This document shows, in pieces, positions 5,808 through 31,982 of a stretch of DNA of 64,000 bases. Under the pieces are notes generated by a model that had not been told where the DNA came from, ran no database searches, and saw nothing but the letters and a program-made list of their open reading frames with translations. Position 1 is the stretch's first letter, and each line of letters opens with the position of its first letter. Source of the DNA: Chlorokybus atmophyticus (taxonomy: Eukaryota > Plantae > Mesostigma and Chlorokybus algae); assembly GCA_009103225.1 (NCBI GenBank), contig RHPI01000026.1, forward strand, positions 939,103 through 1,003,102. The letters are read 5' to 3'. The position numbers and the translations under genes are program-made.

Positions 5808-5929
5808 TGATGGTGATGGGGCACCTGTCCGTCGTGTCTTCAGTGGAGAAGGGTGGTACACTCTAGCTCTAGTGTTTCCGCGTGCAGCAGGATCGATTGT
5901 TAGAGCGTTGCTTGGTACTGTTGCGGTGC

Positions 5930-7199: not shown

Positions 7200-7390
7200 G
7201 CTGTCGTGTTGTTGGTGCTGGTGTTGTTGATGCTGCCGTTGGGCGTGTGTAGCGGCGAGCGCTGTCGCTGTCACCATGTTGATGGCCAGACAGTCGCGTC
7301 AGGAGGGGGCGGCGGCAATATCTCCCTGTCGCTTGGGCAACGATTCAGCAATACCCATGGTGTGCATGCTTGCCACTGCCGCTGGCTCCC
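7200..7390 (+). pseudogene. Diverged fragment of gene X exon 1
   Basis: VLLVLVLLMLPLGVCSGERCRCHHVDGQT aligns by eye with SLLPLSESRGERRRHDDGQT (20170-20000, - strand) and AALGESSCEHRHRDDGQT (~12540). The nucleotide motif atgcttgcca.tgc follows in each copy. Confidence 0.45.
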
Positions 7391-7938
7391 GTGCGCCAAC
7401 ATGCACATTGGTGTGTTGGTGCTGGTGCGTTGTGTGCGTTGGTGCCAGCGCCTCCCTGTTCTGGAGGTTAGCCTCTGTCATCCATGCTTCTATTGTACAA
7501 GCTGCTGTCTGTCCCTTACTTGTGTGTGAGACTTTCTCCAGCAGACAGCTGTGCCTGAGGCATGATGCTTGCAGCGCTCAGAATGATGCCAGCGTCCACC
7601 CACAGCCTATGACGAAATTTAGCTTGTGCATGCTCTGCTTGTGGTTGAGCACCATGCTGCCTCTGCTGATACTGTCAGTGCACTGCTGGTCTGGCGCTTG
7701 AAGCGTTCCGTGCATGCGCCATGCGTTGTCGAGTCTCGCTACTGTCGGCCTACTTTGCTGTGTTTGCCACTGTGTGATTTGTGCATGCTGCAATATTCAT
7801 TGCTAACGCCATTCTGCGTATGCAACCAACTAATGGAATCGTCTTTGTTTTTGCTTGCAGTTCGCCTCACGACTAGACTAACTTCGCGCCGGCAGGCACC
7901 TCCCAAATCAGTTAGGTTGCCTTACAGGGCCCCCAGCA

Positions 7939-9370
7939 TGGCACTGCAGGGCCAGAGCATGGTACGTGCTTGAAAACACTTGATTAGTTGCAGCTCCAAG
8001 GAAAGTTGTATGCAAAGGCATTTGTCGTGTTGCAATGTGTCCTTTGCAACCAACTTATTCAGTCATCTTGCAGGTCCGCTGGATTCAGGAGACACTTTGC
8101 GGCGTATTGTGCGCGAAGAGCTAGTGGACGTTAATAGCAGGTTGGAAGGCCTGGAAGGCGGGATGGACAAACTGAATGGAGGAATAAAGCAGCTGGTGGG
8201 TGAGTCTTTTGAAAGGCTCCTGCAAGATGATTGGATAAACTTGGTCACGAGCCTTTTATGTAAGTAGTTATTCCCCCATTCGGTTTGTCCATTCCCCCTT
8301 CCAGGCCTTTCAACCTGCTATGAACGTCCACCAGCTCTTTGCGCACAATACGCCGCAAGTGTCTAGTAAAAGACAACCCATCCAACTATTTGTCAAAGCT
8401 GCTACGGGTTGTACGGCGGCCAGCCCGTACAGTGGGGTCTCGTGAATCCTTCATGGATCATGTGCAGGCCGCTGCACTTCGCAGCACTCTGACTGAAGAG
8501 GAGATACACAGATGTGACTGCGCATTGGTTGTTTTACATCACGAATTTCCATCACCATTGCACTGATGCAGACATCATTCAGGCCGCCAGACGTCGTGAT
8601 CTGTTACTTAAGGTCTACCAATACGGACGCGACGTCGCCACCGCCACTGGCAGTGGCATTGGGTAAGATGTAGCAATACGTTGGTGACTCTGTTGCCGAT
8701 AGCAAGTGTCTGATTTTGGCAGTTGACCGAGATGTGCTAGTGTACAACGACAACGACAAGTTATTGGACATCTTAGGTGAGCGCCTTGATCAACAAAGCT
8801 CATTCAACTGATTTCCAACTTTGCTTGCTATTGTGTGCAGGCCCCCTCAGCCGCTGCAGTCGCAGCGAGCGAGCTGCAGCGCGCGCAGCCAGAAGTACTT
8901 GGCTGACCTTTGCAGGTGAGACAGACAGGTTGTTGTCTTGCGCAAATGTTCTATCTAGCACTTAGTTCCAATGCCTTGGTCAAGGCAATGACATGCACAT
9001 TGATTGTGATATAGCAAGTACCCAACTCATCACACAAATAGCTTTCAAGATGTTTACAACTACTTGTGCACACAATTGATGCGAGTAACTTAGTGTCAGC
9101 CTGATACTGTTTGCCTGGACGTTGCATGCCTTAAGCGGTGGACAAGTTGGTCTGCGGGAGCTTGTTGTATAATGTCGGTGTAGCGTAGTGCATTATGTTA
9201 CGTTGAGTCTATAAGTTCTATGTGCGCAGTGCGATGTTGAGACTAAATGGTCTGTTACGGCCTTGTTGTGGTTTGTGCAGATGAGGCATTGCCTGCTGCA
9301 GTTGTGGCTGCAGAGCTGACAAAAGAGTGCGAGCCTCAGCCCTTTCCAGTGCTGCACACCTATTTGCAGA
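7939..9370 (+). pseudogene. Possible decayed gene of unknown function with a short coiled coil
   Basis: MALQGQSM followed by a GT..AG intron, then GPLDSGDTLRRIVREELVDVNSRLEGLEGGMDKLNGGIKQLVGESFERLL. Further exon-like blocks lie at ~8340-8530, 8840-8915 and 9280-9370. I could not build one continuous frame. Confidence 0.3.
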
Positions 9371-9412
9371 TGAATGGACGCTCTTGTACAATAGTTCCAC
9401 TGTTGTACAAGA

Positions 9413-9541
9413 GCTCCAGCCCAATACAGACTCACTATCTGTGCACATGCACAACATTGACCAGCAGAAGGTGCAAGTTGCACCATCTGCTGGTCAAAGT
9501 TTTGCATGTGCACAGATAGTGAGTCTATGTTGGGCTGGAGC
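9413..9541. ncRNA. Pre-miRNA-like hairpin, 64-bp arms
   Basis: 9413-9476 is the reverse complement of 9478-9541 with 5 isolated differences, one of them a G-U pair on the + strand. An abutting 11-bp hairpin lies at 9381-9413. Expression is unknown. Confidence 0.5.
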
Positions 9542-10059
9542 AGTTGCTGCTTGTAGCATTGCACGTGTGTAAGTTGTACTTTGGCAAGGTTTGCACTTAC
9601 TGTGTCCACTGTTATTGTACACCGTCACGTACGGTCTGTTCCTTGCGTTTTATCATGGTGTTTCTTGATGCGAGATGTGTGGGCGACAACCAGCGTGCAT
9701 GTGGTAGGCAATGCTAGCACAAACTGCAGCGGCGAAGTTGCGTGGGCACAATGCATTACAAGGGTTGGTGAGCTAAGCTATTCTTTGCTGCACATGTGAC
9801 TTTGTATAATTCTCAGAGTGGTATACACATAGTACCATACCCTTTATATACACTGCATTGTGCGAACATGCAGGCCAAGCGAATAATTCGCAACACTGTG
9901 GATCCCGCTGCAGCAACCATGTATGCCATGTGGCGAGCCAACTGGCGAGCCAAACGAAGCTGCTAAGGAGTAGTGTTCTAATCGGCAATACTGAGCGACA
10001 TAACCGCGTAACATATTACCATTCAAGTGTCATATCATCTGGTCTGGTTGTTTGACAAT

Positions 10060-12246
10060 GTGTATCACTTGAATGCAGTGGCCATCTCCTTGTCCAGCTT
10101 TTGCATTAGCAGCTTCTGTATCAGTTCTTGGTCAGCGCGCCCCCCCGACTTCTGCATGATCTGCAGAACAGATGTGCTTGTCAACCTGCAATGCCACCAC
10201 ATGCAAGGCAGGAACATACTTGTCCGACGAAGAAGCCTGGCACTGTCCGCTTCAGTTGGTGATGTCTCAGCAGTACAACACCATGTTGAGGTGCTGAATG
10301 ATCAATACACCGTATACAAGCAGACATGCATGCGTTGAACAATGCCCTGAGCTGAGCCTGGGTAAAACTCCAGAAGTCTGATGTCGTCATGCGCCTGCTT
10401 TGGGTTGGAGTTAAGTACCTCATCCAATGACGCCCATCATCCACAGTTGGCAACAGCCTTGGGCTCGGCTTCCGACAAGCATTGTCGAAGAACAAAGCAT
10501 TGGTTGCCTCATCCACCAACAACAGCGCCTCCGCAAGAGGCAAGCGGAGTGCGAGGTAACCCTGCCTCCTCTGCAAGCACTGTAATGAAAAGCCTCGCTA
10601 GCACCCAAGCAAGCAGGGTACGCATGCACGCACAGAAGCGTGCACACACTGACGCACGCACGCACAGCACCTCAACTTTTGACACCATCTGAGGTGCTAT
10701 AGTGCTGTGGTGCAAGCATGCAAGCAGTCATGTGCATGCAAACAAGGATACACACGCACATGTGCACAGCAGCACGCACACATCATGCACACGCGCATGC
10801 ACGCACAGAAACTGACAACATCACAGCACTTCAAGATGTGTTATGACACTTCAGGTGGCGTGCTAATGTAGTTGCTTTGTGCTATCAGCGCTCACCTCAT
10901 CTGGCAGCTCTGGTGGTGTGCTGCGCTCATTAGCCAGAATACCATCCGTGATGCGCTTCAGGAACATCTGGCTTGGGGAAGTATCAGTAGTCTGCGAGGC
11001 CCTCTCTGTTCAGGCATAACAGTCATGAAGTTGACACGCAGACTTGCCGGAGCTGTTTGCCATTCAAGATGCTTACTGGCGTACTTCCTTCGCATGATGA
11101 CTGTTAGTTGACCAGCTTCATCCCACAGCCTTGTCTCGCTGATCTCGTGTTTTCGACCAGCTTCATGCAGAGCTACCTATCTACGACGCTATCTCAAGAT
11201 CTACTGCGCGCTGCACGCCTACACACCATCAGCTGAAACTTAGACCTGCCAACTGCCTGTTCCGAAAGCACACACGCCATGCAAGCAACACAACACGCCC
11301 ACAAGCCTGTGCTAGTCACAGAAGTCCAGACGTCAGCAGACACGCCAAAAGATGAAGAACACACATGCCCGCACACGCACACATCTGTGTTTCACGCATG
11401 CAATTGCACACGCGCACGCGCGCATGCAGATGAGTGTGCACCTGAGGACATGTTGCTGATCTCCACTTTGGTGGCACAAGAGGCACGCTGGGCCGGTGCG
11501 CTGAGACTTTGGGGCAGCGCAGCGCAGGCTGCCCTGACGCGCGTCGCCCGCAGACACACGTAGATACCGTCTTATCTCAGCGCAATACTCGGCTGCTTTG
11601 ATTCCCAAAGGTAAGTGGGGCGCGGACGCAATCTCCAGCAGAGGCACGCCGGGCCGATCACCCGCATACACCTTTGTACATACCACATACGCTGCTGCCA
11701 TTCACAGCACCTTGTGTACCTGTGTTACAGTAGATTGTCGTGCAAAGCGAGCGCACTTACATGTGTACGCACCCACACACGCTTGCACACACACAGACTG
11801 ACAATACAGCTTTGGCTGAGCCAGTGATAACGGAATGAGCAGCTCAAAATCCCGACCCTCACCACCGGCAACAGCAGGAGGCAAACGCTGCATAGCCAGG
11901 TGATCTGACAACCTTAGCAATGCAATGGGATTGGCCATACAGCATGCATTACAACAAGCAACCAAAGCGCTTAGGTGCTGAGGTCCATGTAGTTTGTGAG
12001 CGCGTCACACGGACTACGCCCCCAACCTGCACATGGGTTTCAACTCCAATGACGGCCTCCAACTCTCCACCAGGCAGCTGAAGCTGCCGCAAGCACTGAC
12101 GCATTCCCCGGCAGCAACCACCTCAGTGAAGCAGGCTGGTGCGCCTTCAGCTGCGCACCTGTGAAGGAGGAGGACGACGACGGTGAGGACGGCAAAGGCG
12201 CCGCATGCTTACGGGACACCCTCAAGCACACCTCCTCCGCCTGCAT
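10060..12246 (-). pseudogene. GATB: GATB pseudogene copy A (remnants of all 8 exons)
   Basis: Matches the intact gene at exon 1 (12246-12030, frameshifted), the 3' part of exon 2, exons 3 and 4, a fused exon 5/6, and exons 7 and 8. Introns are retained; it has stops, frameshifts and internal deletions. Confidence 0.9.
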
Positions 12247-12249
12247 TGT

Positions 12250-12425
12250 CCACTACATGCTGGGGTAGGTGTAGACGGCGGCAGCGGCGAGGCGGAAAGG
12301 ACGACGAGTGAGATGAGCGGAAGGTGGAGGAGCAGGGGCACAAGGAGGAGCAGCAGGAAAGAGCGTTGACGGCAGGGTGGCGAGGCCATGCCAGCCTGCC
12401 GTGCGGGTAGGAGGCGGCAGGAGTG
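12250..12425. promoter_or_regulatory. Duplicate of the GATB/TPS intergenic (bidirectional promoter) segment
   Basis: tacatgctggggtaggtgtagacggcggc...gggtggcgaggccatgccagcctgccgtgcgggtaggaggcggcagg matches 32003-32165. Confidence 0.8.
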
Positions 12426-12467
12426 GGGTGTGTCGTCGCTGTGTTTAGCAGCTGCAAGTGGCTGTAG

Positions 12468-13371
12468 TTGGTGTGGTCGTGGAGCTGGGTGTTAGCGCTG
12501 TGTTGCCTACCTGCGCTCTTGCCACTGCATCTTGTTGTTGCTGCCTTGGGCGAGTCCAGCTGCGAGCACCGTCATCGTGATGATGGCCAGACCCGTCGGC
12601 GGCGTTTCATTGTCGCTAAAGCTGGAGCAACGCACCCAAAGTATGTGCGTGTGCGTGTATGCTTGCCAATGCGAGTAGCATCAACCTTTAAGAAAGCGTC
12701 TGTAGACGCACGCGTGCAGTCGTTAGAGCAGCTGCGTGCTGGTCATTCGTAGCGTCTTGCATGTAAGCCCAACAACTTGCTGTCATCATTGTCTTCTAAC
12801 CCCAATTAGCTACTACCGACGCATACAACCTGCGCATGCATCCAATGCAACCTTTGCTTTGTGTTCGCGCAGTTCGCAGTGTTGCCAAACCAATTTTGCC
12901 GTGCCGGGAGACTACACTCAGATCATCATTGAAGCTGCGGCATGCAATGACGCTCCAAAGTCCCGAGCATGGTGCGTGCTTTCAACATCAAAACATCTCT
13001 GTTCAAGCACAGGGTTGCATTCACACGCATCCTCTTTGTATTGGTGCAATGCCGTTGACAATTCCAAGCTTAAGTTCAAGTGTTGTATGCAGGTGCGCCA
13101 GACTCTGACAGTTACACTCTTCAGGATTTGGGGCGAATGATGCGAAGCCCTTGAACGGGGAGTGGATTGGCTGGTTTACGACTCTTTTGCAAGAAAGTAT
13201 GAAGCAAAGCCGGAATTGTACCTATCCATACGGGTTGAACTTCGGGACCACTTTGAATCACTAACGACATGCGAGGATATTGGTTCCGATGCTGCGCATC
13301 TGTTGGAGATGGCGGTCGAGTTGGGGATGCTGTGTGTGCTTCCCAACACAGTCGTCAGAAACCCCGAGTGA
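12468..13371 (+). pseudogene. Gene X copy 1 (unknown protein, signal-peptide-like start), decayed
   Basis: Four exon-like blocks: ...DDGQTRRRRFIVAKAGATHP; ...SLEQLRA...; ...QTNFAVPGDYTQIIIEAAACNDAPKSRAW; ...EMAVELGMLCVLPNTVVRNPE*. Homologous to 19268-20170 in inverted orientation. No ATG; frameshifts present. Confidence 0.6.
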
Positions 13372-13429
13372 GTGACTGTACCTTGCTGAACAATTGTTGT
13401 ACATTGCAAACTCCTTTGTAACATTACCG

Positions 13430-14400
13430 TGCTGTGCGCAGAGGTCCCATCCAGACGCAATGAGCGCCATATGGCCCATCACTTGTGTTCGGGCTTGCAG
13501 CCTTTCCTGGAGCGGTCTTATAGTGAATGCTGTATTGCATTGCTATCTTATGCGGTGCATGCGAGCTTACAATCAATGCGCAAGTGTTTGTTGTTGTGGG
13601 AGTCTGACAGCACTGTGGTCCTCCCAACATGCAGATCACGACATACTGCATGAATAGTCCAGTTTATTCATAGCTGGAATAACCACTCCGTCGTCAAATT
13701 GTACAGGGCTCTGAACATAGCTTACTGTGTGCAGCTGCTTACCTAATACAATGCACTGTGCAACCGCGAAGACTGCGCAGACCTTGCGCGACATTGACAA
13801 TTCCACTGCAGCATTTACAAATTGCCATTTGAGCTGGCACGAGCCGAACTAGGCTACCAGGAATGGAGCAGTACACTAGACACTGCTAACCTGAGTGAGT
13901 AACTTCCGGTCTACAGCTATTCCGAATGTTATGTCACTTGGATGCAGTGGCCAGCTCGCCGTCCAGCTTTTGCGTTGGCAATTGCTGTGTCAGTTTGTAA
14001 TCAGCGCGCCCCCCCAACTTTTGTATGATCTGCAACACGCGCACTTGTGAAGCTCAAACTGCACTGCAAAAGGCGCAGCATGCAAGACAGAAAGTTGCCC
14101 ATCATCCTGTTGGCAACAGCCTTGGGCTCGGCTCCTGACCAAGCACGCGCTGTGCGAAGAAACAAAGCATTTGCTGCCTCGTCCGCCGGCAACAGCCCAT
14201 CCGCAAGAGGCAAGCCGAGGTCAACATATTGCTGCCTCCTCTGGAAATGCACCATAATAAGAAACCTCACTAGCACGGCAGCAAGCATGCATGTGCGCAC
14301 AGATGCACCAAAGCATGCTCACACTGCGCGCACGCACTCATGTGTGCGCGCACAAGGATACGCACGCACGCACCTCATGATTGATCAATTTATGAAGCTA
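13430..14400 (-). pseudogene. GATB: GATB pseudogene copy B (3' flank, last exon, part of exon 5)
   Basis: 13430-13960 resembles 28470-29000; 13950-14035 is the last exon; 14090-14240 encodes [28 protein letters not shown]...PKAVANRMMG. Confidence 0.85.
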
Positions 14401-14460
14401 CTTGAGGTGCTGTGGTGCTGTCGCGCAAGCAATCATGTGCATGCTGCTGTGCATAAGCAA

Positions 14461-14846
14461 AAACGCATCCTTTGCTTCGTGCTCGCGCAGTTCGCAGTGT
14501 CGCCAAACAGATGCTGCCGTGCCGGGAGACAACACCGAGATCATTGAAGTTGCGGCATTCAATGACGCTCCAGGGTCCCGAGCATGGTGCGTGCTTTCAC
14601 ATCGTTGTCCCAGCATAGGATTGCATTTCACAAGCATCCTCTCGACGACATCACACCAATGCACAGAGGATGCTTGTAAAATGCAATCCTATGCTGGGAC
14701 AAAGATGTAAAAGCACGCACCATGCTCGGGATCCTGGAGCGTCATTGAATGCCGCAACTTCAATGATCTCGGTGTTGTCTACCGGCACGGCAGCATCTGT
14801 TTGGCGACACTGCGAACTGCGCGAGCACGAAGCAAAGGATGCGTTT
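14461..14846. repeat. Near-perfect foldback: 182-bp arms with a 22-nt loop, built from gene X exon 3
   Basis: 14461-14642 is the reverse complement of 14665-14846 with about 5 substitutions and no indels. The arm sequence is homologous to ~12845-13040 and ~19590-19785. Confidence 0.95.
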
Positions 14847-15139
14847 AATATATGCACAAGGTTGTAGGCGTTGCTGCTGGCTATTTGGGGCTAGAAGTCA
14901 ATGATGACAGCAAGTCTTTGGGCTTACTTGCAAGACGCTGCGAATGACCAGCACAGCACGCAGCTGCTCGGACGACTGCACGCGTGCAGCGTTCTCAAAA
15001 CCTGATGCTCATGTTAGAGGCAGGCGTGCGGCATACTCAACTCGCAGTAACCAACACAACGTGGCGAGTGCCGGCAGTAGCTAGACAAGAAGCTACGCAG
15101 CACCAGAGCAGGGACGTTTGCAGCAACATGACGGACCAG

Positions 15140-15300
15140 CACCCCTACCGGTCTACTGTTGGCGCACGGCAACGAGCCAGCGGCAGAAGCAAGCGTTGGG
15201 GCGTGGACATCCACACACGCTGACCTTGCGTGCGTTGCCCCTGGCCCCTATCAGCCCCAGCGAGAGGGGGAGACGCCGCTGCACAGCGCGCCAGGTCCGG
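15140..15300 (+). pseudogene. Possible degenerate ankyrin-repeat fragment
   Basis: LLLAHGNEPAA...GAWTSTHA...REGETPLHSA resembles the ankyrin consensus (LLxxGADxN, GxTPLHxA). It is isolated and preceded by a stop. Confidence 0.3.
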
Positions 15301-15609
15301 CCATGATGAAGGAGAGCGAGCGCTCGACTCGCCTACCGGCAGCAACAAGACCAGTACCGCCTCCGCCTCTGCCACAGCCGCGTCAATGAAGGAAGGAATG
15401 ACCTCCGACTGCTGCTCCTGTGTCCGCTGGTAACCATGCCACGCAGAGTGATGACGTGAGCGGTCATGTGAAACTCGTGTCTGTCGCCAACCAAGTGAAT
15501 GCGCTGTCAGCAGTGGCTAATCTCGCAGTTCATTTCAGCACCAAAAGTGTGCACAGAATCGGTGGGAGCGGTCCGCAGTACTCTGTACGCCGATCTGTGT
15601 GCCTCTGTT

Positions 15610-16670
15610 GCACACAGGCACACAAGCTGGCGTTAACGGCAGCGGAGAGCATGCGTGGTACATGTATGCAGAGGGTACAAGTCATCTTGGCATGCATGCA
15701 GGTAATCGAGCCGGCATGCACACCCCTGCTGGAGATGTTGTCCGAGCCCGTCTTGCGTCCGGGAATGCATGCGCTGCGATGTCCACGTCTCAGTGCACCT
15801 CATGCAACCGAAAATGGAGATGCTCAACACGAACTGTTTCCCAGGTGCACGCCCATCTGCATGCGCGAGTGCATTTGTGCATGTGCGTGTGCGCACGCGT
15901 GTGTGTTGGCTTGTATGTTTACGTCTGCACTTCTGCGACTAGCACAGGCTTGTGGGTGGGTGTTGTGTTTCTTGTATGGCGTGTCCGTTGTCAGAAAGCG
16001 GCTGGCAGGTCTGAGTTTAAGCAGCGCGCAGCAGATTGTGAGATAGCGAGGCACACAGCGCTGCAGATGAAGCGGGTCGGGGACACGAGTGAGACAAGGC
16101 GGGCAAAAGACGGTCACCATGCGAAAGAAGTACGCTAGCAAGCTTCTTGAACAGCAAACAGCTCCGGAAAGTCTGCATGTCAACTTAATGACTGCTATGT
16201 CTGCACAGAGCACAGTAGTCTGAGAGGCCATCTGTGCCTCTCAGACTATCGTTACTCCCCGAACCCAGGTCTTCCTGAAGTGCGGCATCACGATTGCTGT
16301 TCTGGCTGACGAGCGCAGCAAACCAACAGAGCTGCCAGATAGGTGAGCACTGATAGTAGAAAGCGACTACATAACCACAACAGCTCAAGTGTCGAAATAA
16401 AGAAATGGAAGTGACGTGCTGTGGCAATGTAGCCAGCTGTGCGTGCATGAGTGTATGCACGCACATGATTGCTTGCGCGACAGCACCTCAAGGCGTGTCC
16501 TGTCCATCACGGAGATCGCTCGCAAGCCAGAGAATCTGGCTGAACTTCTACAACTCATCCAGAAGGGCATTATCTCTGTGAAGATCGTCAAAGAGTTGCT
16601 GTCAGAGCTTCTGCGCAATTGGTTGTAAGGCTGCCGAGCTTGTCGAGGCCAAGGCCTTTCGCAGGTGCGA
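15610..16670 (+). pseudogene. GATB: GATB pseudogene copy C (inverted): intron 1 end, 3' part of exon 2, exons 3 and 4, part of exon 5
   Basis: + strand matches to the exons, e.g. 16500-16665 VLSITEIARKPENLAELLQLIQKGIISVKIVKELLSELLR versus intact [40 protein letters not shown]. Confidence 0.9.
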
Positions 16671-16999
16671 TTGCCTTGCTCACCACTTGAGGACGTTGCT
16701 GAATATTCTTCTTTCGCTGATTGTGTTTGCCTACTCGTCTAATGGTGCAGATCGTCAACGTAACGCGGCCTCTGCAACGGCACTGTTATTACAAACCTGG
16801 CACGCAAGCAACCATGTGCACACCCACAGGCACAGCCGCGCACGAAACCATGCACACACTCACGCACACATGCATGTGTGCGCGCGCACACAATTGCATG
16901 CACGCACAGCACCTCCGATTGTGATTTTACGTGCTGTGGCGCAAGTACACAAGCAAGCAAATGCACGCACAAGCAAATAAGCACAGAAGCATGCACGCA

Positions 17000-17890
17000 C
17001 ACAGAAAGTGACTACAACACCACAGCACCTCAAGTTGTGCTTTGAAAGTTGGGATACTGTGATGATGTAGTTGCTTTTGGATATCTGTGCTGGCCTCATC
17101 CGGCAGCTCTGGTGGTGTGCTGCGCGTCATGAGCCAAAAAACAGCATCCGTACTGCGCACTTCAGGAAGATCTGGCTCGGGGAAGTACCAATAGTTTGCC
17201 AGGCCCTCTCTGGGCCGCCCAGAGATGTATGCGGCAGACATCACAACTATCAATTGATGTTCAAACTTGCAGACCAGACCTATCTGCCAGTCAAGATGCT
17301 TGCGTGCTTGCTTGCTTGATATACATCTTTCGCATGGTGACCGTTGTCTGACCAGCTTCATCCCACAGCCTAGTCTCGTTCGTAATTTCCTGTCCCCGAC
17401 CCACTTCATGCAGCGCTATCTGCCTTCCAATCTCCAAATCTGCTGCATGCCTACAGATTATCAGTTGGAACTTAGACCTGCCAACCAAGTTTGTTAAAAG
17501 GACACACGCGCAATATGAGAAGCAACTTGCTAAAGCAAGCTGGATTAGTCAAGCAACTGCATGCAAACATGCACGCCAAAGCACATCGCCAATGTGTACA
17601 GGTAACTACGCATGCATGTTGACTAACGGGGCAAGGGCTTAGCGAAGGTAGCTTCCTAGTATGTATAGGTAGCCCGGTGGTGTAACAAGTTGTTGTTTGC
17701 TGGCGTGTGCGAGTGCGCTTGTGTTTGCATGTGTCATGCATGTGCACAATGCAATGGGGTCACATGCATAGCATTGCATATACGCTGCACACGCACGCAT
17801 GCAGACTCATGTGCACCTAAGAAAGAGTTCATGTTGTTTATCTCCACTTTGGTGCCCAGAGTCGTGCCGGGTCGGTGCACTGTTCAACGT
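17000..17890 (-). pseudogene. GATB: GATB pseudogene copy D (exon 2 end, exons 3 and 4)
   Basis: [36 protein letters not shown] and [18 protein letters not shown]. Exon 2 is degenerate and truncated. Confidence 0.9.
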
Positions 17891-17993
17891 ACGCTCATGT
17901 ATGTTTGCGTGAGCGCGGGCTTGTATTGAGTGCACTGGGTTTTCATCCCCAACATCACATGGTACTGCAGCTAGAGCATTACTGATGACGGCG

Positions 17994-18095
17994 NNNNNNN
18001 NNNNNNNNNNNNNNNNNNNNNNNNNNNNNNNNNNNNNNNNNNNNNNNNNNNNNNNNNNNNNNNNNNNNNNNNNNNNNNNNNNNNNNNNNNNNNNN
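17994..18095. other. Assembly gap (N run), followed by a G run
   Basis: N characters in the sequence. Confidence 1.
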
Positions 18096-18164
18096 GGGGG
18101 GGGTGTCTGTCGTGCACACTGCGCCTTGTGCAGTGCAGTTTTAGGTTCACAAGCGCGTGTACTG

Positions 18165-19260
18165 CAGATTATGCAAAACTTGGGGGGACGCGGTCATCCT
18201 GAAGCACAAGTTGGACGGCCAGCTGGCAACTGCATGCAAGGGAATTTATACTGTGAAAGAGATAGACACTGGACAGATCAGGATAGCAGTGTTGTATAAT
18301 GCTCCATTCCTAGCAGCCCAGTGTCGCTCGCGGCAGTCATGATGGCAACGTGTGTACAGGATATGCGCGTGGCTGCTGGTCACATGCATCACACAGCATA
18401 CTACACGCGGCGTACAGAAGATGCAAGCTACATCACGCGCATGCCAAGCATACTGCACTCACATGTCACACACATTTAGCATGATATTTCACATATAACA
18501 CCACCGGGGGATATACTATCCTTTGACTACTACACTACTCGCTGAGCACATACCCCATTAACCATGTATGCATGGCAATTCACAGTCTGTACCTGCACGC
18601 ATGAGCAGCTAGTTAGTCTCCGACATCTTTGCAACAGCACGCAGTATCAACAGCAGACAGACGCCCACTCCCACTCCCACTCCCACTCTCTCGTTCGCCT
18701 TCACCCACAGTCTCACTCATGCCATCCCCTGACAGTCTTGCTGCGTCAACCCCTCATCCAAGACCCCTCTACCCCGCCCCTCTGCCCCACCCCTTTACGT
18801 ATGCTGCAGTGGAACTGTCAATGCTGCGCGACGTCTGCGTGGTCTTCAAAGCTGCACAGTGCATTGTGTACACGCTAAAGGCATTCACTGGCGCTGCACG
18901 CAGTAAGCCATGTTCAGGAATCATGCGAGCTGCGCGACCAACTTGTTGAACCAACGGTATCTATAGCGTGGTTGTTGATGCTGAATGTCATAATCTGCTT
19001 GAGGGCCACACTGCAGTTCTCTCTGACTCTTACAAAAACAAACATTTGCTATTACTGTACATTCTGGGCTCGCACGTGCTGCATAACATGGCAATGTAAC
19101 ACGGCAGTCACTATGGAACCGCTTCACGAAAGGCTGCAAGCGACCAACCATGAGTGATGGGCCGCATGGCGCTCACTGCGGCCGCAGGATGGGAGGTCTG
19201 CGCACAGTGCAATAAAGTTGCAAAGGAGTTAGCAAAGCGCAACGTTTGTTCAGCAAGGCA
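18165..19260 (+). pseudogene. GATB: GATB pseudogene copy E (inverted last exon plus 3' flank)
   Basis: cagattatgcaaaacttggggggacgcg...ttggacggccagctggcaactgca matches last exon [10 protein letters not shown]...KLDGELATA. 18780-19230 is the reverse complement of the 28470-28880 flank. Confidence 0.8.
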
Positions 19261-19267
19261 GAATGAC

Positions 19268-20170
19268 TCACTCGGGGTTTCTGACGACTGTGTTGGGAAG
19301 CACGCACACAAGCCCAAACTCGGCCGCCAGCTCCAGCAGCACAGCATCGGAAGGTGAGCCGTCCTCGCATGCCGTTTCGTGATTCATGTGGTTGAGTCCG
19401 AGCATCAAGTATTCGTAAAACGCTGCGTTCTCTTTTATCTTTCTTTTCAAGGAGTAGTAGAGCAGTTCATCCAGTGCCCGTTCCATGCTTTGCAACATTG
19501 CCCCCAATCCAGAACAGTACAATTGTCAGAACTTGGCGCACCTGCATACAAGATTTAGTAAGCTCCGAGCAGACTGTCAACAACATTGCACCAATGCAAA
19601 GAGGATGCTTATGAATGTAACCCTATGCTGGCACAAAGATGTGTTGATGATGAAAGCACGTACCATGCTTGGGACCCTGGAGCGCCATTACATGCCGCCG
19701 CTTCGATGATCTGAGTGTCGTTGCCCGGAAAGGCAGCATTGGTTTGGTGACACTGCGGACTGCACGAACACAAAGTAAGAGTTAAGTTGCATGCATGCAA
19801 GGTTGTATGCGTTGGTAATGGCTATTTGGGAAGGAAGACAATGATGACAGCAAGTCTTAGGCTTACATGCAGGACGCTACGGATGACCAGCACAGCACGC
19901 AGCTGCTCTAACGACAGCAATGCGTCTACAAGCGCCCTCTCAAAGCTTGCTTCTATCGGCAATGGCAAGAATACGCGCACGTACATACCTTGGGTGCGTT
20001 TCTGCCCCAGCTTCAGCGACGATGAGACGCCGCCGACGTGTCTGGCCGTCATCATGACGACGGCGCTCGCCCCTGGACTCGCTCAACGGCAGCAGCGACA
20101 AAATGCTGTGGACGGCGAGAAGCAGGTAGGCACCACGGCGCTAACACCCCACTCCACAACCACACCAACT
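19268..20170 (-). pseudogene. Gene X copy 2 (inverted), decayed
   Basis: GAYLLLAVHSILSLLPLSESRGERRRHDDGQTRRRRLIVAEAGAETHP; SFERALVDALLSLEQLRAVLVIRSVLH; QTNAAFPGNDTQIIEAAACNGAPGSQAW; ELAAEFGLVCVLPNTVVRNPE*. GT/AG signals flank the blocks. An upstream in-frame TAG is present. Confidence 0.6.
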
Positions 20171-20199
20171 GCAGCCACTTTCGGCTGCTGATCACAGCG

Positions 20200-20382
20200 A
20201 CGACACACCCCGCTCCTGCAGCCTACCCGCACGGCAGGCTGGCGTGGCCTAGCGACCCCACCCAGCACTCTCTTGCTACTCCTTGTGCTCCTGCTTCTCC
20301 TCCACCTCCCCCATCTCGTCCTCGTCCTCGTCCTTGTCCTCTTGCCCGCCCCCCCGCCGCCGCCGTCTACGCCTACTCCAGC
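20200..20382. promoter_or_regulatory. Second, inverted duplicate of the GATB/TPS intergenic segment
   Basis: Reverse complement of 12250-12430 and 32003-32165; homology ends at ...cgtctacgcctactccagc (20382). Confidence 0.8.
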
Positions 20383-20524
20383 TTCAAGGCGCGAATGCTG
20401 CTCTTGGTCTTAGATTTAGTTAGAAAAACCAGATAGGTAGGCCTATTTTCAGGCGGGTGGCCTGGCTCAGCCGTGGAGGCTGCCTCTGGCAATCATCAAC
20501 CGAGGTGACGGTGTATATATCGAC

Positions 20525-20991
20525 CAGCTTAGGGGCAAAGCCCTCAAAACGGCCAGTCCTTGCGTTGTCCGGGTCTGCGCTAGTGCAGCGCGGTCATCAG
20601 TGACCGGCGCTGAGTCGGCGTGGATATTGGTGTGATGGGTCCAGCGAGTCGGCATCGACCGACTGTTGGGATTTGCATAGACAGTGCCTGACAGGGTTAT
20701 GACAGGCTGCCTTTGTCGACGCTGACGGCGGCAATTAACATGCTTCTCCTCAATGGATCCCAACTGATAGACGACACCCGCTTTGACGACCGCCGACAAA
20801 AGTGCTCGTAGTCTGGCGTGGTCACGCGGATCAGCACCGACAAACCACACCGGTCCGCGCAGACTCGTGCACGGTCAGCAACAGCGGTCACCGTAGACTC
20901 TCGACGTCCAAAACCCCCACGTCGGCGCAGACCGGAATAGCCGGCCAGCGACCCGGACAACCCAAGGAAATGAGGCTTTGCCCCTCGGCTG
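20525..20991. repeat. ~470-nt island closed by imperfect terminal inverted repeats (MITE-like or structured RNA)
   Basis: 20525-20575 pairs with 20950-20991 (aggggcaaagccctca with tgaggctttgcccct; tccttgcgttgtccgggtc with gacccggacaacccaagga). Several internal hairpins are present. Confidence 0.5.
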
Positions 20992-21726
20992 CGACGTGGG
21001 AGCTGTGAAGCTGTTGACTGTTGCCGTGTGGTGACCTGTGACAGGTCGTGTTGGTGGTGTTGTGAGCGGCTGTGAAGCTGAGTGTGCTCGTCCGTGCTGC
21101 GCTGTGAGATGTTGTGATCCTTTAAGTCTGTCACGAGCACGGATGCTGGTACACTGCTTTGGCCTTTGGTACACACCCCGTCAGGGTACACGCGATGTGC
21201 CATAGTACATGACGTAAAACATGACTTTCTTATGCATGCGTAATAAGTGGTTGATGATAGCTTTTATCAACTTGATTATGTAAAGACAACGCGTAGTTGT
21301 GGTACTAGTCAAGAGTATGCAGAAGCACATGGCATCTACTTACACACAAGCGCGTGAATGAGGTTTAAAACACATAGTGCGTGTAGCAAATGTCAATTGT
21401 TTTAAATATTATTTGCGATATTATTCTTGTTACGAGTAGTACTTATAATATTCTTGCAAGCATGTGTGTGCGTACAATATATGATGTAAACATGTATACG
21501 TGTTGTTGTTAACTTGACGTAGGGCTATCATGCCTACATCGCCCGCGCATACCAGCTTTCATCGAGCATGCCTACATCGAAACCATTGCCCAGCTTACCA
21601 GTATACCAGCTCGCGCGCATCACTGATCAGTAGCGAGATCATAGCTCTGGAGTAGCTCATGACCATAGCCTACATAGGCACCATGCGTAGCTGTCTATTT
21701 GCGAGTGCGATTATAGGTTATGTTCC

Positions 21727-22060
21727 ATATCGAGTGGGGGTTTTGTTAGAAATAGCCTCAATATGACAAATAGCTTATGTTCCGAGTAGTCATGATTTGA
21801 CTTGTATAAGTAGTCAGGGTGTTCACCGGATCAGCTGGTGACACTGTGAGCGAGAAAGCAAAGAGCTTGTGGAGCAACTTGATGTATGCTTAGTTGTGAG
21901 TTGTGCTCTATATCAAGTGGGGGTTTCTTTGGAGGTAGCCTCGGCATGACCATTAGCTTAAGTTCTGAACATCATATTTTGACTTGTATAGTCATGGTGT
22001 TCAGCGGATCAGCTGGTGACACTGTGAGTGAGAAAGCTAAGAGCTTGTGAAGCAACTTGA
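21727..22060. repeat. Diverged tandem duplication, ~183-bp period, 2 copies
   Basis: Units start at 21727 and 21910 and share ggatcagctggtgacactgtgag.gagaaagc.aagagcttgtg.agcaacttga. Confidence 0.9.
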
Positions 22061-22788
22061 GCTATGAATCACGCTGTCTCGATTGCCAAGAATCCCTTCA
22101 CAGTGTGAGGGCCTGTGCATGCTCTTGTGCACTATGCTTGTCATTGCTGTGAGCGCGGTGTGCTTGGTTGGCATCAGTGGCATCATTGTGGGTGTCAGTA
22201 CATATGTCCACGCACACGTATGTCTAAGGGGCTAGTAGTAGCATAGCGTAGCTGAGTTAGCGATTGAGCTACCCCGGTGGTGTTGGTTATGTGATAAGCT
22301 GTGTGGGCTGGTGATCATGCATGCCATGCACGATCTCCGCGCACCATGCATGTTGGCATACGTACCATACCCCTTATATACGCACTGTAGCATGCATGCG
22401 GACTCCATATCTCAAGTATGTATACGATAATCAAATTTGGCTTGATGTGTGTTAGTGCATGCAGCCGCAGCTGCTCTTGCTGCTCTGGCAACAGCTGCTT
22501 GTGTTGCAATTGAAGTAATTGTGAAACTAACACAAACTGCATGCAATAGCATCGTTAATATGGCAGATGGCACTTGACAAAACTTCTTGACGTCTTGAGT
22601 ACCCCACATTGAAACTACCGGTGCAGGAAGTGTCTCATCACCCATTACTGCTGAGCTACACTGAAAGATCGACTCGCACTTATCCCTTATGCTATGCTCA
22701 TCCATCTATCAACTGCCCAGCGTGTATGCAGTGGTTACAGCTTGCAGAACGGGTTAGTGCAGACAGAACTATGGGTCTACCGCTACTA

Positions 22789-25070
22789 CTACTTGCACAG
22801 CTTGCCAGCCACCCATGCATCGTCAACAACATTCAGCTCAGCGTTGCCGTAACACTTGTTGGCATAAACCCGTCCCGAAAGAGCTTGCACACCTGCGATC
22901 AGCAGCAGATGTGAGACACACATACATGTGTGTGCGTGTACTCGCGTGTATGTGCATTGTTGCAGTTGACAGAGTTTGCGCACATTGTTGTTGCGGCCCG
23001 TCCCGGTGTAGTACGCCCAGTACTTGCAGGCGAGGTTGGTCTTGCACTTGTGGCAGCAGGTGTCAGAGTCGCGGACGCCGTTGATCCACTTGATGCAGTC
23101 TAGCAGGAAAGTCTTCCACAAGCCCGTGGACACCGGCCTCGAGCAGAACGACTTACACTCCTTGATACCGTTGAGACGCTTCTGCACATGCCAAGATCCA
23201 ATCATTTGTAGCAAGATGCATGTAGCCATTCACGCCTGCGCACACGCGCCTGCGTACATACACGCCGATGTGCGCACACACGCACTTATAGCATTGTCAA
23301 CACACCTGTTCGTAGAACCTATGTTCGCAGATGCAATCATAGCCGCTGGTCAGAGGCTGGCAGCGGCCGTAGGTGCCGCACGGGTTGGGGTTGCAAACTG
23401 TGCACACGGATAGTCAAAGAGCAAACACTGGCGTGTGACAGGCAGTCGCACGCCAGTGTGCATGTTTACGTGACCAATCTCCTCTTCACGTAGGCACTCA
23501 CCATCAGGAGTAGGTGCCGGTGGCAGTGGCGGTGGTGAGGGTGATGGGGGTGGCGGCTGTGATATCTCTTCGAAGGTGCGCAGTGTAACTTTTGATGCAT
23601 TGATGACCCACAGGGCATCTGCTGCGGGAGGATGATTATACCCCTGCACGCCCATGAAGGCGTGCGGGGCGTAGGCGCCAGGACCAGCTGACGTGACCGT
23701 CCATGCACCCCCATTATCTTGTGCTCCTGTTGATATACGCTCAATGTCAATACGAGATGTGGACGCAATGTTTGTGTGCGCCCTGGTCTAGCCTACGTGC
23801 GCAAATACGCGCGCACCTGACCCTCGGTCATCCCATACAGATTGTGCTTGTCCAGGGCTGGCCAGGGCTGCACGCAGAGTGACGAAATATGGTGCCTCTT
23901 TAGGTGTGGGTGCTTCCTCATTGGAACCCCCCCCGGCGCTCCACAGGCACCCCAGAGCCCGGTATCCTTGCGGCACGGGACACCAGATGCTGTACGTTCG
24001 GGGGCTTCTCATCCTCCACACGCGCTGCCAGCCGAAAGGGGAGGCTATTGGTGGCCATCCACGAAAAGCGGGTTGAGTGTTTAAGTCGATGGTGTCGTCG
24101 CTGCTGGGCGACGACACCATCGACTTAAGCAACACACCAGGTTTGCAAGCACATACAAAGTAAGTCGCTAGGCAGCCACAAGCACTGGCACTCAACACTC
24201 GGCATCAAAGACGGACCCCTCCCCCCCCCCGTCCCTTCGTACAGTTTGATGTTTGGGTCAATGTGGCCAGCCGTCGCTGTTTGCCGAAGTATTAGCCTTG
24301 ATGGGGCTTGAAGAAGGTCACATTCTTGTCAGCCGTGGAGCCCTCATCATCTCCCGCGAATGCAAGCTTGAACAAGTTGGCATTGATGGCTGACACGTCC
24401 CAAACTTATTGTGGGTCGGGAGCGGGAGGTTTGAGGGCAGGTTGACGAGTTGTGTTAAGCTCTGGAGCGGGACCCTAAGGCCATTGACAGCATGAAGAAC
24501 TTCTTGAGGAGGAGGAGGATCGCATAAGGCCGCCCGACGAAGCTGAGTGGGGCATTGTTCCCTTGCGTGGCTGAGGCCTCTCACACAGTGCCGTCGTCCT
24601 GAGCACCTGCACATGTGCACGCGCAGTCGTACAGCATCAGCATGGTTGTTGCGGGCATGTTGTGCACAGCGCGGGTGGCTGAACTGGGAGAGAACACACA
24701 CAACACCGCAAACGCGCTCAACCTAAGCCCCGGTCGTTCAATATGAACCTTGCTTGGCCTTGGACCACCAGGTCGTCGCGCAGTGTGACGAGTCCCACGA
24801 TTTCGCTGGGGTCAGGTGCAGCGGCGTCTGCCTGGCCGTTGCCTATACATGAAGTATACCGCCAGACGCACCCCAGGGTGGTGTAGCCAGGAGGAGGTAC
24901 CGGGCACCAGATGCCAAAGGCCACATTGCTCCTGAGGAAGCCGCATTTGGTCATCCCCCAGATCCTGTTCCACCCCGCGGGAGGGGTGACAGCTGGCGTG
25001 TTGTCTTGGGGGGAGTCGAATGCGGGGCCCTTCCCGTACAGCACCACCGGAGTGCCCTGGCTGCGCACGC
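22789..25070 (-). pseudogene. Vps62-like repeat protein with a Pro-rich linker and C-terminal PAN/Apple-like domain; pseudogene, 5' end not located
   Basis: Repeats: [25 protein letters not shown]|AQDDGTV*, VTFFKPHQG*YFG, SIWCPVPQGYRALGCLWS..WDDRGSGA, GAQDNGGAWTV. Then PPPPSPSPPPLPP, then DCIKWINGVRDSDTCCHKCKTNLACKYWAYY. In-frame stops at 24583-24581 (TGA) and 24294-24292 (TAA). Confidence 0.65.
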
Positions 25071-25072
25071 TC

Positions 25073-25198
<126 letters not shown>

Positions 25199-25431
25199 AA
25201 AGGCCCTCCAATAACTGAGGCGGACGCGGTGCTCGCGTAGCGCAGTGACGTGCACGTGTGGGTGGGTGTTTAGGGTTGTATGTGGTGTATGCGGGCAGGC
25301 ATGGTGTAGCACTGACAGCCAACACGTACGTGACCATCGTAATAGAGATTTCTCATCAATTCAATAAAAAGAATCTTAATCTCACCGCTGCAGGAACTTT
25401 GCTTGTTGGCATAATGGCTCTGAGGTAGTAG

Positions 25432-27222
25432 GTGATCTTATTAAGCGGTCCTGTGCACATCACATGCGAAGTGTTAATATGCAACATGCATGCCAGCGCT
25501 GACATTTTGTTTCTCCATTTTGTTTATTCATCAAGCACACAGTATTATACAAGCTTACACCAGCACCGGGCTATCACAGCGACTGTGATAGCCCGGTGCT
25601 GGTGTTGCATGCTTGTGTGCAGTATGGAGGTGCGCAAGACTTGCTGCATGTGATGCATGGCGTTGAAATGCATGTCTACAACATTGCCACGCTCATCCTG
25701 TACACTATTCCTGCATCACCTACTCCACAATACATGCCTTCCAGCATCTATACCGCAACACGATGCCGCACCATCATCTGCACAGTTGCATCTGTCGGCA
25801 TCAGACCATGCTGTTGTACGCGTGCTGCAAGACCACATGATCCTTACACAGGTGGACAAGGCAGCTAATGCTTTTGCTTCTGTTTGCAAGTCATACTACC
25901 TCCGAGTGCTGCATGCTGAATTGTCTTCATCGACCTATCAACTTGTGGCTCATGAGACTGCAGAACAGGTGTTGGCCAGGCATGACACTTCCAACGAACA
26001 ACACGATCTCAAGACTGTCCAACACGGTAGCCCAAAGCTGCCACACTTCTACATGACAGCTAAGATGCATAAGGCTCCACTAAAGCTGCGGTTCATTGCA
26101 CCGCTTTTGCCACTTCTCTGGCTGATGTCTGTGTGGCTAACACGTGCTTACAAGTTCTTGAGACCAGTCGCTGACGATTTGTGGGCACCATGTGTACATG
26201 ACCCTATGGTGCGACAGTCATGGGTCCTGCAAGACTCACAGGGTCTCAAACGGTGGCTGCTCTACCTCAAGACATCCTGTACCATGCAAGAAAAGCAACA
26301 ACCCGTACACCTGGCTACGTATGCTTTTACTACTCTCTACACGTGCATACATCATGCTGAGTTCCTGATGCGCATGCAGAGTCTAGTTACTACAGCTTTC
26401 TTGTACATGCACATGACGACTCTTGCTAACACTCTGCAAATTACGGTTTTCAATGGCATTGCGACGCATAGTTGGGCTGCTGAACACACCATCATTACTG
26501 AGGGGCAAACCAGAGTGTTTTTTATACCGCTGAGGGGTTGCATGCTGTACTAACCCATGGTGAGTAACATGTATGTGCGTCTTGCAGCGGACAGGTTGCA
26601 TCAACAGGTCATTGGGATTCCTATGGGAAATAGCGCAGGTGTCTACCTAGCCAACAATTTCCTGACATCCCTTGAGCTAGACTGGTTGAGGTTACTCAAA
26701 CCTCTGATGCCTCGTCCGTTATTCGCACATTATGCACCAGGCATTGCACACTTTGTTGATGATCTTTTTGTTGCGGGTGTGCCAAACTTTGCTGACGTGA
26801 TGTACAAGTCGGAGGGTGCAATAGCAGGAGGCATCTATCCACAAGACATGTTGACACTGGCTATGACCGCTCAGGGAGTGCAACTGCCTTATCTTGATAT
26901 GCTTGTGTTTCAAGCACCTGACATTAATGTGGTGACCCGTTTGTACAGTAAGCGGAGAGAAGCTGCATTTGCACAACTGCCGATCATGAGAGCACCTCAT
27001 CCGGCGTCCAACATTGCCAAGGCTACAAAGCAGAACGTGGTTGTGTGAAAGTGCTTTAGGTTCTCTCGGATATCCACATATCGTGCACACTTCCTGGCAG
27101 AGATCACGCGCCTCCTGGATGATATGCAGGCTATGGGCCACAGCTGGAGAACTTTGCTGTCTCGCTTGCGCACTGTGGTGTGGTCTAGGCCGGGATTTGT
27201 ATTGAATGGCATTTACAGGTAA
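25432..27222 (+). mobile_element. Penelope-like retroelement reverse transcriptase (Naiad/Chlamys type), inactive, probably truncated
   Basis: One reading frame broken by stops at 25651, 26551 and 27046. Motifs: VDKAANAFASVCKSYYLRVLHAEL, KLPHFYMTAKMHK.PLKLRFI, TYAFTTLYT (Asp lost), QVIGIPMG, FVDD, PYLDM, TRLYSKR, CFRFSRI. No GIY-YIG domain or hammerhead ribozyme was recognised. Confidence 0.85.
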
Positions 27223-27885
27223 TTGCATCTGCTGCAGCAACGCCACAGGTGGGATGAACACTGGTAAGTGAGGTTAGTGAGGTGAGGATGAATGTGTGTA
27301 TTAGCACACAACGGAGGGGAGCATTTTCGTGCCCGCTGATAGTGCATGACACACGTGACTGTGGGTGCTTAACACTGACACTAACGGCTACAAAATTATC
27401 CTGCAGCCTGCAGCCGTTGTGAGTTGTGAATGGCGGGTGTAAGCCGCGATTAAGACAGCTGGCAGCGAGGGGGCTGGTCGTGGTCGTGGTTCTGGTCGTC
27501 AGTCTGTCCGGGCCTAACCTCTCCCTCTCCCTCTCCCTCTGCCTCTACGCTGTACTGTGCAGGTACAGCTGCTGCGCCTCCTGTCGGCATCTTCCTTGGT
27601 TGGTTGGCGTGCACTTAGCTAGCCAGCCCTTACAGCACTTAGCTCTAGGATTCGTGGTCGTGGTCGTGGTCGTGGTTGTGGTTATGGTTGTGGTGGTTGT
27701 GGTGGTGGTGGTGGTTGTGGTTGTTGTTCTTGTAAATGAAATTGCTGGTGGGAAGGAGTAGACATTGGGTATGTCACATACTAGCTTAGCGCGCCTGTCA
27801 TGGGCCTGCGCTGTGAGGCCGCGTGTGTGTGATCCTTGGTGTTCTACCACTCTTGCTGTGCATATGTGTTGGCTTGGCTTGTGGA

Positions 27886-28136: not shown

Positions 28137-28209
28137 CAACCCCGATGTGTATACCAATCAACACCCTTACGATGCGCATGGGCAGACAACGACACTGCCA
28201 TCATGTATA

Positions 28210-31950: not shown

Positions 31951-31982
31951 TGTGCGCAGGCTAAAGCCTACCGCTTCGCCTC

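Follow-up and report, generated by a model that had tools for sequence, protein, structure and literature searches.

Can the inverted remains of a housekeeping gene, lying near the gene itself, give rise to double-stranded RNA (dsRNA) that acts back on it, or are such remains inert? The question is raised by a stretch of 64,000 nucleotides from the early-branching streptophyte alga Chlorokybus atmophyticus (assembly GCA_009103225.1, contig RHPI01000026.1, positions 939,103 to 1,003,102 of the forward strand), which we call the window and to which all coordinates below refer. A first-pass annotation of this DNA described positions 12250-20382 as an imperfect palindrome of ~8 kb that carries, at both ends, a copy of the promoter segment between the genes GATB and TPS, each facing inward through a "gene X", and it proposed the interval as a duplication-born dsRNA locus yielding sense and antisense RNA of GATB exons and of X. 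GATB belongs to the GatCAB pathway and is an essential single-copy gene of organellar translation. Having followed up this proposal by computational analysis, we consider the stretch at 7.2-20.4 kb likely to be a pseudogene cluster of the ordinary kind, that is, a decayed set of DNA-level segmental duplications of which the "8-kb palindrome" is a by-product.

Five disabled GATB fragments and an intact parent gene

The window contains an intact GATB, which is divergent from a TPS-TPP gene, and five fragments derived from it. With the GATB exons searched singly by reference, the parent locus and the fragments were delimited as follows:

28999-31950, minus strand: intact parent GATB, with eight exons by open reading frame (ORF) and Pfam mapping
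31951-32274, no strand: intact GATB/TPS intergenic region, between the GATB ATG at 31950 and the TPS ATG at 32275
10063-12247, minus strand (direct): copy A, with parts of exons 1 and 2, exons 3 and 4, parts of exons 5, 6 and 7, and exon 8; BLAST chain to 28997-31921 at 71-76% identity
13248-14246, minus strand (direct): copy B, with the downstream region/3' untranslated region, exon 8 and the 5' part of exon 5; 29155-29731 deleted
15617-16701, plus strand (inverted): copy C, with fragments of exon 2, exons 3 and 4, and the 3' part of exon 5; BLAST and nhmmer match from 31436 down to 29505
16800-17883, minus strand (direct): copy D, with the intron 4 minisatellite, exons 4 and 3, and the 3' end of exon 2
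17877-19404, plus strand (inverted): copy E, with an intron 6/7 piece, a gap of N, exon 8 and the downstream region; BLAST match from 29315 down to 28275

In the parent, the frames are open in all exons, and the exon ORFs carry the Pfam domains GatB_N (E=6.5e-75) and GatB_Yqey (E=6.3e-27). A word-index search of a protein collection with the intact exon 5 ORF returned bacterial/cyanobacterial-type GatB fragments as its best matches (57-64%), and no self-match. All five fragments are truncated, with several exons missing, and all carry indels that are not a multiple of three. Copy A is without equivalents of 29404-29731 and 30963-31518 and has frameshifting indels in exons 1-5, its exon 2 ORF following the intact exon for just 50 residues before the frame is lost. 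Copy B, which is 72.6% identical to 28288-29155 and 82.7% to 29731-29883, has three 1-nt indels in exon 5; copy C has multiple frameshifts; and copy D (70.6% to 30010-30714, 90% to 30711-30801) is frameshifted in exon 4. This exon inventory bears out the earlier claim that the palindromic interval contains sequence of GATB exons 2 (in part), 3, 4, 5 and 8.

Because introns were copied together with exons, the fragments are DNA-level duplications and not retrocopies. All three features that define a duplicated (non-processed) pseudogene were found here, namely homology that includes introns and flanks, disabling lesions, and the presence of an intact parent. Judged by their sequence, all GATB fragments are pseudogenes, and the intact gene at 28999-31950 would be the one that does the work. 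A CACGCA-rich, 73-bp minisatellite of GATB intron 4 (29925-30089) was copied along with the fragments (14250-14460, 16800-16915 and 10620-10760) and forms several of the copy boundaries.

X is probably the former neighbour of GATB rather than a coding gene

In each arm, the promoter fragment and the GATB-downstream sequence are separated by a span of ~820 bp (X1 and X2) that is absent from the intact locus. X-derived sequence occurs in the window at these positions:

7223-8174, plus strand: X0, the leftmost unit, upstream of copy A; nhmmer matches with an X1/X2 profile at 7223-7383 (E=6e-14) and 7792-8174 (E=5e-14)
12427-13247, plus strand: X1, joined to a promoter fragment at a putative tandem-duplication junction; 79.6% identical to X2 over 788 columns
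14436-14642, plus strand: left arm of a young foldback, copied in inverted orientation from part of X3 (X positions 417-621)
14665-15348, minus strand: X3, running from X position 654 back to 112 and going with copy C; nhmmer matches at 15030-14632 (E=5e-99) and 15348-15207 (E=5e-7); its first 182 nt are the right arm of the young foldback
19405-20209, minus strand: X2, the right-arm copy; full-length nhmmer match (E=3e-301)
28213-28297, plus strand: faint remnant of the X 3' end; nhmmer match to X profile positions 755-847 (E=6e-4)

X0 is the oldest and most diverged of these copies, and a profile search found collinear GATB-downstream remnants between it and copy A (8782-8873 and 9844-9998). 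The succession of X and then the GATB-downstream segment is seen at X0-A, X1-B and X2-E, and as a trace at the intact locus, where the region 28275-28998 downstream of GATB is also within the duplicated unit and where the X remnant adjoins the upstream edge of the duplicated part, in the position and orientation predicted. As X0 stands before copy A and a trace of X persists at the intact locus, X appears to be the ancestral downstream (convergent) neighbour of GATB. We had also entertained X as a diverged 5' end of TPS, a candidate rejected in view of the older copy X0 upstream of copy A and the trace upstream of intact GATB. Just upstream of this trace, two long consecutive ORFs on the plus strand (25657-27048; 298 and 163 aa) are flanked by an (AG)59 microsatellite (25076-25193) on one side and a 126-bp tandem duplication (27886-28136) on the other. 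They have no Pfam match and, by eye, a reverse-transcriptase-like FVDD motif, and they may mark an insertion by which X was destroyed at the intact locus.

As a coding gene, the "gene X" of the first-pass annotation does not hold up, having neither protein relatives nor a coding pattern of substitution. A Pfam scan of 14 ORFs from X, X0, the foldback and an unexplained stretch gave nothing above noise, and an Rfam scan of the whole window gave 0 matches at the gathering threshold. The best coding-looking ORF, of 84 aa in X2 (19271-19522), straddles the boundary between X and the GATB-downstream sequence, and a deep HMMER search with it against 1.84 billion representative proteins returned a sole match to a bacterial repeat protein, which we judged spurious, and no self-match. 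Between X1 and X2, identity is equal in all six frames (tblastx), with no 3-periodicity (p=0.72). Splice-site-like motifs are common to X0, X1, X2 and the foldback, and from its sequence X is probably an orphan, once-spliced transcript sequence rather than a demonstrated gene.

Promoter fragments share one junction with X

A promoter copy at each end of the interval, facing inward into X, had been claimed, and 170-230 bp copies of the GATB/TPS intergenic region are indeed present at both ends:

12248-12426, plus strand: left promoter copy, the upstream region of copy A, with its TPS side facing X1; 81% identical to 31996-32169
20210-20442, minus strand: right promoter copy, cut short close to the start codon of GATB; 73% identity between 20210-20382 and 32169-32007, with a profile match that reaches 20442

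The left copy includes a 52-nt perfect run at 12372-12423. Every copy diverges from the intact sequence at 32166-32169, and the intergenic end of the duplicated unit is 32169, which leaves the promoter copies 106 bp short of the TPS ATG. Since both arms leave the intact sequence at the same base and enter the same X sequence, the promoter-X junction was formed once. All three promoter copies have the 22-nt block GCCAGCCTGCCGTGCGGGTAGG in identical form (12390-12411; 20222-20243 on the minus strand; 32133-32154). The block occurs nowhere else in the window and is a candidate cis-element of the bidirectional promoter. In 2 of the 3 copies, the block overlaps a small inverted repeat (CCTGCCG...CGGCAGG).

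The palindrome is a composite of copies with different histories

The inverted similarity over ~8 kb is real, as a BLAST self-comparison of the window aligns both the outer and the inner arms in reverse orientation. The outer arms, 12259-13814 and 20382-18801, are reverse complements at 75.2% over 1622 columns (E=0), followed by an inner segment (13822-14091 versus 18348-18106) at 69.7%. The inner arms align at 16028-16379 versus 17446-17058 (66% over 397, E=5e-23), and a profile search extended them to 15869-15741 versus 17791-17883, both of which are the 3' end of GATB exon 2; 16501-16701 is without an inverted partner. Ungapped inverted blocks are 57-153 nt long with a complementarity of 77-88%, and the identity of the aligned outer-arm blocks is fairly even at ~75-88%. 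GATB- and X-derived sequence is thus present in both orientations, as had been stated, with exons 3-4 facing each other in copies C and D, and exon 8 plus the downstream region in copies B and E.

What the alignments do not reproduce is a single centre at ~16.8 kb, as the outer arms centre on 16.1-16.3 kb and the inner arms on 16.7-16.8 kb. Part of this offset is accounted for by a 478-bp insertion in the right arm (18323-18799). Limited to copy E, the insertion has no counterpart in copy B of the left arm or in the intact gene. Its sequence is rich in C, includes (CCCACT)4 and ACCCCTCTACCCC repeats, and resembles nothing else in the window.

Nor do the arms descend from one 8-kb inverted duplication, although the origin of the locus by duplication stands. 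For exons 3-4, where four copies overlap (the intact gene R, A, C and D), the tree is ((R,D),(A,C)) with a support of 100/99. Because C is sister to A, and D to the intact gene, the inner arms belong to different lineages and are not the products of one inverted duplication. For the downstream non-coding segment, the intact copy, B and E form a three-way polytomy (shared-site counts 68/63/52; Kimura two-parameter distance, K2P, 0.32-0.36), and the outer arms are hence no closer to each other than to the parent. Within X, K2P is 0.028 between the foldback arms, 0.14-0.16 between X1 and X3/foldback, 0.21 between X1 and X2, and 0.22-0.25 between X3/foldback and X2.

The grouping of A with C, together with the closeness of X3 to X1, revealed a second large imperfect palindrome, in which A through X1 (10786-13058) faces X3 through C (16459-14642) around a centre at ~13.8 kb, with copy B in the spacer. 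Unlike the inner arms C and D, this palindrome has arms that are genuinely each other's sisters, A being grouped with C and X1 with X3. At the smallest scale, the arms of the young foldback (14461-14642 and 14665-14846) are 97% complementary and are separated by a loop or spacer of 22 nt (14643-14664), and at the orientation switch between copies D and E the two units overlap by 6 nt (17877-17882). Short foldbacks also occur at 8090-8364 (76% over 291 nt) and at 9375-9541 (91% over 129 nt, plus an abutting one of 44 nt). The presence of three local foldbacks in 7 kb suggests that the region is prone to fold-back copying.

From the anatomy of the copies, we infer the following order of events. 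The ancestral unit would have comprised X on the plus strand, GATB convergent to it on the minus strand and, ending at 32169, the GATB-proximal part of the intergenic promoter. A tandem duplication would then have joined 32169 to the start of X, with the promoter-X junction as its scar. Later inverted (fold-back) duplications, deletions, an insertion and the growth of the minisatellite would have scrambled the copies, the youngest event being the fold-back copy of part of X3. Today, five fragments of GATB and four copies of X are left, lying in both orientations. Hairpin-capped breaks and template switching during replication are sources of fold-back inversions and of palindromic duplications, and to judge from the junctions either route may have operated here.

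Predicted long helices lie mostly in X and the promoter copies

As RNA, the 386-nt foldback at 14461-14846 is predicted to fold into a near-perfect stem of 182 bp (-379 kcal/mol, z=-40.7), with five mismatches that are mostly not G-U compatible. Within the window, its 21-mers match only X1 (60 with at most 2 mismatches, 5 of them perfect) and X2 (23), and not GATB. The large arms are old (K2P 0.21-0.33), and perfect complementary runs of at least 21 nt number just four in the outer arms (38, 23, 22 and 22 nt), with none in the inner arms. When G-U pairs are allowed, the outer arms form 12 unbroken helices of at least 19 bp, 11 of which lie in the promoter copy or X and one at the X exon end, and none in GATB exons. 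The natural sequence from copy C through the spacer to copy D pairs across the arms at 306 of 750 nt, with two 20-bp helices. This placement of the helices does not support a dsRNA made of GATB exons. If any part of the cluster makes dsRNA, the best candidate in these predictions would be the foldback at 14461-14846, and its small RNAs would match X, not GATB.

Inert remains or a source of small RNAs

Most likely, the cluster has no role in regulating GATB and is a graveyard in which fragments of GATB and X lie inert, together with a single young foldback that would be worth a small-RNA check. Its ratio of observed to expected CpG (0.77) does not differ from that of the window (0.81), and it hence bears no mark of long-term methylation decay.

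Several observations nevertheless weigh against this reading, in which inertness is itself something we infer from sequence. The invariant 22-nt promoter block is a longer run than expected by chance (p ~6e-4, column shuffling), hinting at constraint or gene conversion. A 38-nt run comprising an X exon end and its GTGAGT donor (CGAG followed directly by GTGAGT) is identical in both arms (13336-13373 versus 19266-19303 on the minus strand; p ~0.002); an ORF without homologs, open in either arm and 84 aa long in X2, is closed by this run, the donor of which is decayed or lost at the intact counterpart, ~28375-28410. X as a whole is ~81% identical between the arms, versus ~73-74% for the flanks. 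The 22-nt block, the 38-nt run and the higher identity of X could reflect residual function or local gene conversion. The outer arms, when joined by a 10-nt linker, pair in silico at 1270 of 1556 nt (82%) with about twice the energy of the control, in line with the claim that the arms are able to pair. The interval also matches the intact GATB exons 2-5 and 8 with 12 perfect 21-mers, ~95 with at most one mismatch and ~283 with at most two, where a size-matched control gave 0, and perfect runs between the interval and GATB exons reach 20-27 nt. The first-pass annotation had named a lack of sufficient complementarity to the intact GATB mRNA as grounds for abandoning its proposal; the matching 21-mers are enough to remove these grounds as far as sequence goes, and trans-silencing of GATB would be possible in principle. 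Chlorokybus moreover has an algal-type Dicer-like gene and two Argonautes (PMC7994812), and RNA interference is hence possible in principle. Finally, small RNAs in rice have been mapped to an inverted adjacent pair of pseudogenes with a predicted duplex of 185 nt, an identity of 83% and a 1.3-kb loop (Guo et al. 2009, PMC2708354).

Among the alternatives, the one that survives best takes X to be a lineage-specific spliced non-coding or orphan gene, copies of which are still expressed through the co-opted promoter, with the foldback as a small-RNA precursor acting on X and the GATB pieces as passengers. X being the best-conserved part of the arms speaks for it, as do the splice-site-like motifs kept in X0, X1, X2 and the foldback, the exon end and donor of the 38-nt run kept in both arms, and the near-perfect 182-bp stem with 21-mers that match X1 and X2 only; moreover, some Chlamydomonas miRNAs appear to be imprecisely processed from fairly long hairpin precursors (PMC5511227). 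We regard this account as unlikely, however, given that X has no protein or RNA family match and that the X1-X2 substitutions look neutral. Furthermore, because its mismatches are mostly not G-U compatible, the foldback fits a recent origin better than selection on RNA structure.

We hold it decidedly improbable that, as the original proposal implies, the promoter copies drive convergent or read-through transcription and that diced sense/antisense or fold-back RNA lowers the intact GATB mRNA in trans. A cis-natural antisense siRNA locus would need two active promoters that face each other. The two inward-facing promoter fragments of 170-230 bp, which retain the conserved 22-nt block, the arm pairing in silico, the 21-mers matching GATB exons 2-5 and 8, the rice pseudogene siRNAs, including those of the inverted adjacent pair (PMC2708354), and the Dicer-like and Argonaute genes of Chlorokybus (PMC7994812) all favour the proposal. 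Both fragments, however, end at 32169, and because they stop 106 bp before the TPS ATG, the core promoter and start site of the TPS side may be missing from them. The arms, which are of old date and imperfectly matched, have no helix of at least 19 bp in a GATB exon, the outer-arm loop is at least 4 kb long, and the inner arms are not a matched pair. Constitutive silencing of an essential GATB would, in addition, be costly. Of the dsRNA-locus interpretation, what stands is the duplication origin, the presence of both orientations, the promoter fragments, the GATB-matching 21-mers and the in silico pairing; the single inverted duplication, the GATB-exon helices and a coding X find no support.

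A living small-RNA locus is about as improbable. Here, duplicated promoter fragments would drive X transcripts antisense into GATB-derived sequence, the foldback would act as a trigger, and small RNAs would tune GATB. If true, the cluster would be a pseudogene-derived regulator midway between duplication and MIRNA-like refinement, in an early-branching streptophyte alga with only an algal-type Dicer.

We give hardly any credence to a Pack-MULE- or Helitron-type transposon that captured and spread GATB and X fragments. The occurrence of gene fragments in both orientations, the hairpins at 8090-8364, 9375-9541 and 14461-14846, and the unclassified long ORFs at 25.6-27.0 kb that adjoin the intact locus would be compatible with such an element, but the copies are local and collinear, and entire introns were copied as well as the promoter. 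At its left end, the palindrome continues into copy A with no terminal repeat there, no terminal inverted repeats bracket a unit, unit boundaries run into neighbouring units, and the Pfam scan found no transposase or Helitron helicase domain among the ORFs scanned.

Assembly gap and flanking gene

A run of 102 N (17994-18095) falls within GATB copy E, over the end of exon 7. Its flanks correspond to adjoining positions of the intact gene (17986 to 29204 and 18107 to 29155) with orientation unchanged, and the reference sequence missing across it amounts to ~48 nt, versus the 102 N. By these coordinates, the gap does not lie at a rearrangement breakpoint. Since the flanks are collinear, and a false join of different copies would be unlikely to give adjacent, same-orientation coordinates, we treat the join as sound; because copy E is a pseudogene, the reading frame across the gap is irrelevant. 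The position of the gap coincides with the end of the outer-arm pairing (14090 opposite 18107), and the inner limit of the right arm is fixed only to within the gap. An assembly artefact, in which pieces of a smaller number of real copies would have been misjoined or misoriented in the scaffold, deserves as little credence as the transposon: the gap does lie ~115 bp from the D-E orientation switch in a repeat-rich cluster, but the sequence on either side of it is collinear with the intact gene, the remaining junctions fall in uninterrupted sequence, and copies that are 15-30% different are distinct loci, not collapsed or duplicated reads.

Upstream of the cluster, a spliced AAA+ ATPase gene on the plus strand (4150-5810; Walker A motif GPPGTGKT, AAA_lid_3 E=2e-13) appears intact.

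Significance and comparison with known systems

Read as a pseudogene cluster, the region offers a well-resolved case in which tandem and fold-back duplication would have shredded a housekeeping gene and its neighbour into nested palindromes. For annotation, the fragments should not be called genes, and they document fold-back rearrangement as it occurs in nature. Hardly anything is known of small RNAs in the earliest-branching streptophyte algae (PMC7994812); if small RNAs were present here, the locus would be a test case for hairpin-derived regulators arising before plant-type Dicers evolved.

Like other clusters of duplicated non-processed pseudogenes, this one keeps the introns, promoter and flanks of its parent, and its members are truncated, frameshifted, 70-85% identical to the parent and at most 20 kb away from it. 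It differs from them in its unusual density, with three short foldbacks, two large palindromes that overlap, four copies of X and five GATB fragments inside 13 kb, and in having as its parent an essential housekeeping gene of the single-copy type.

The inverted rice pseudogenes, which were reported in a study that also cites pseudogene-derived endo-siRNAs of mouse oocytes (PMC2708354), resemble the GATB fragments in that two pseudogenes of one parent lie near each other in opposite orientation with a predicted duplex between them. The rice stem, however, has mapped small RNAs, whereas the present cluster is known from its DNA sequence. The GATB-derived stems of copies C and D are also weaker (66-76%), and the outer-arm loop exceeds the 2-kb limit of the rice study.

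Inverted duplication of target-gene sequence is also the starting point of the model of MIRNA birth reportedly put forward by Allen et al. in 2004. As in that model, inverted sequence of the would-be target gene is present here and complementarity to the parent mRNA persists outside any eventual small RNA, but the arms do not come from one duplication. Young loci of this type are marked by almost perfect arms around a short loop. Here, the arms derived from GATB are of old date and imperfectly matched, and the sole near-perfect foldback derives from X, not GATB.

Long hairpins are said to serve as small-RNA precursors in Chlamydomonas (Molnar et al., 2007). The 386-nt foldback is similar to them in shape and size, with a long stem and a short loop (compare PMC5511227). 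It differs in that no target besides the X copies was found for it in the window and any small-RNA output from it would be hypothetical, and the host Dicer is of a little-studied algal type (PMC7994812).

The cluster also resembles fold-back inversions and palindromic duplications. Although the mechanism here is read from junction anatomy alone, and the older junctions are too decayed to read, features of such rearrangements recur in the cluster: an inverted copy that abuts its template over a 22-nt spacer, palindromes nested within one another, and the 6-nt overlap where copy D gives way to copy E.

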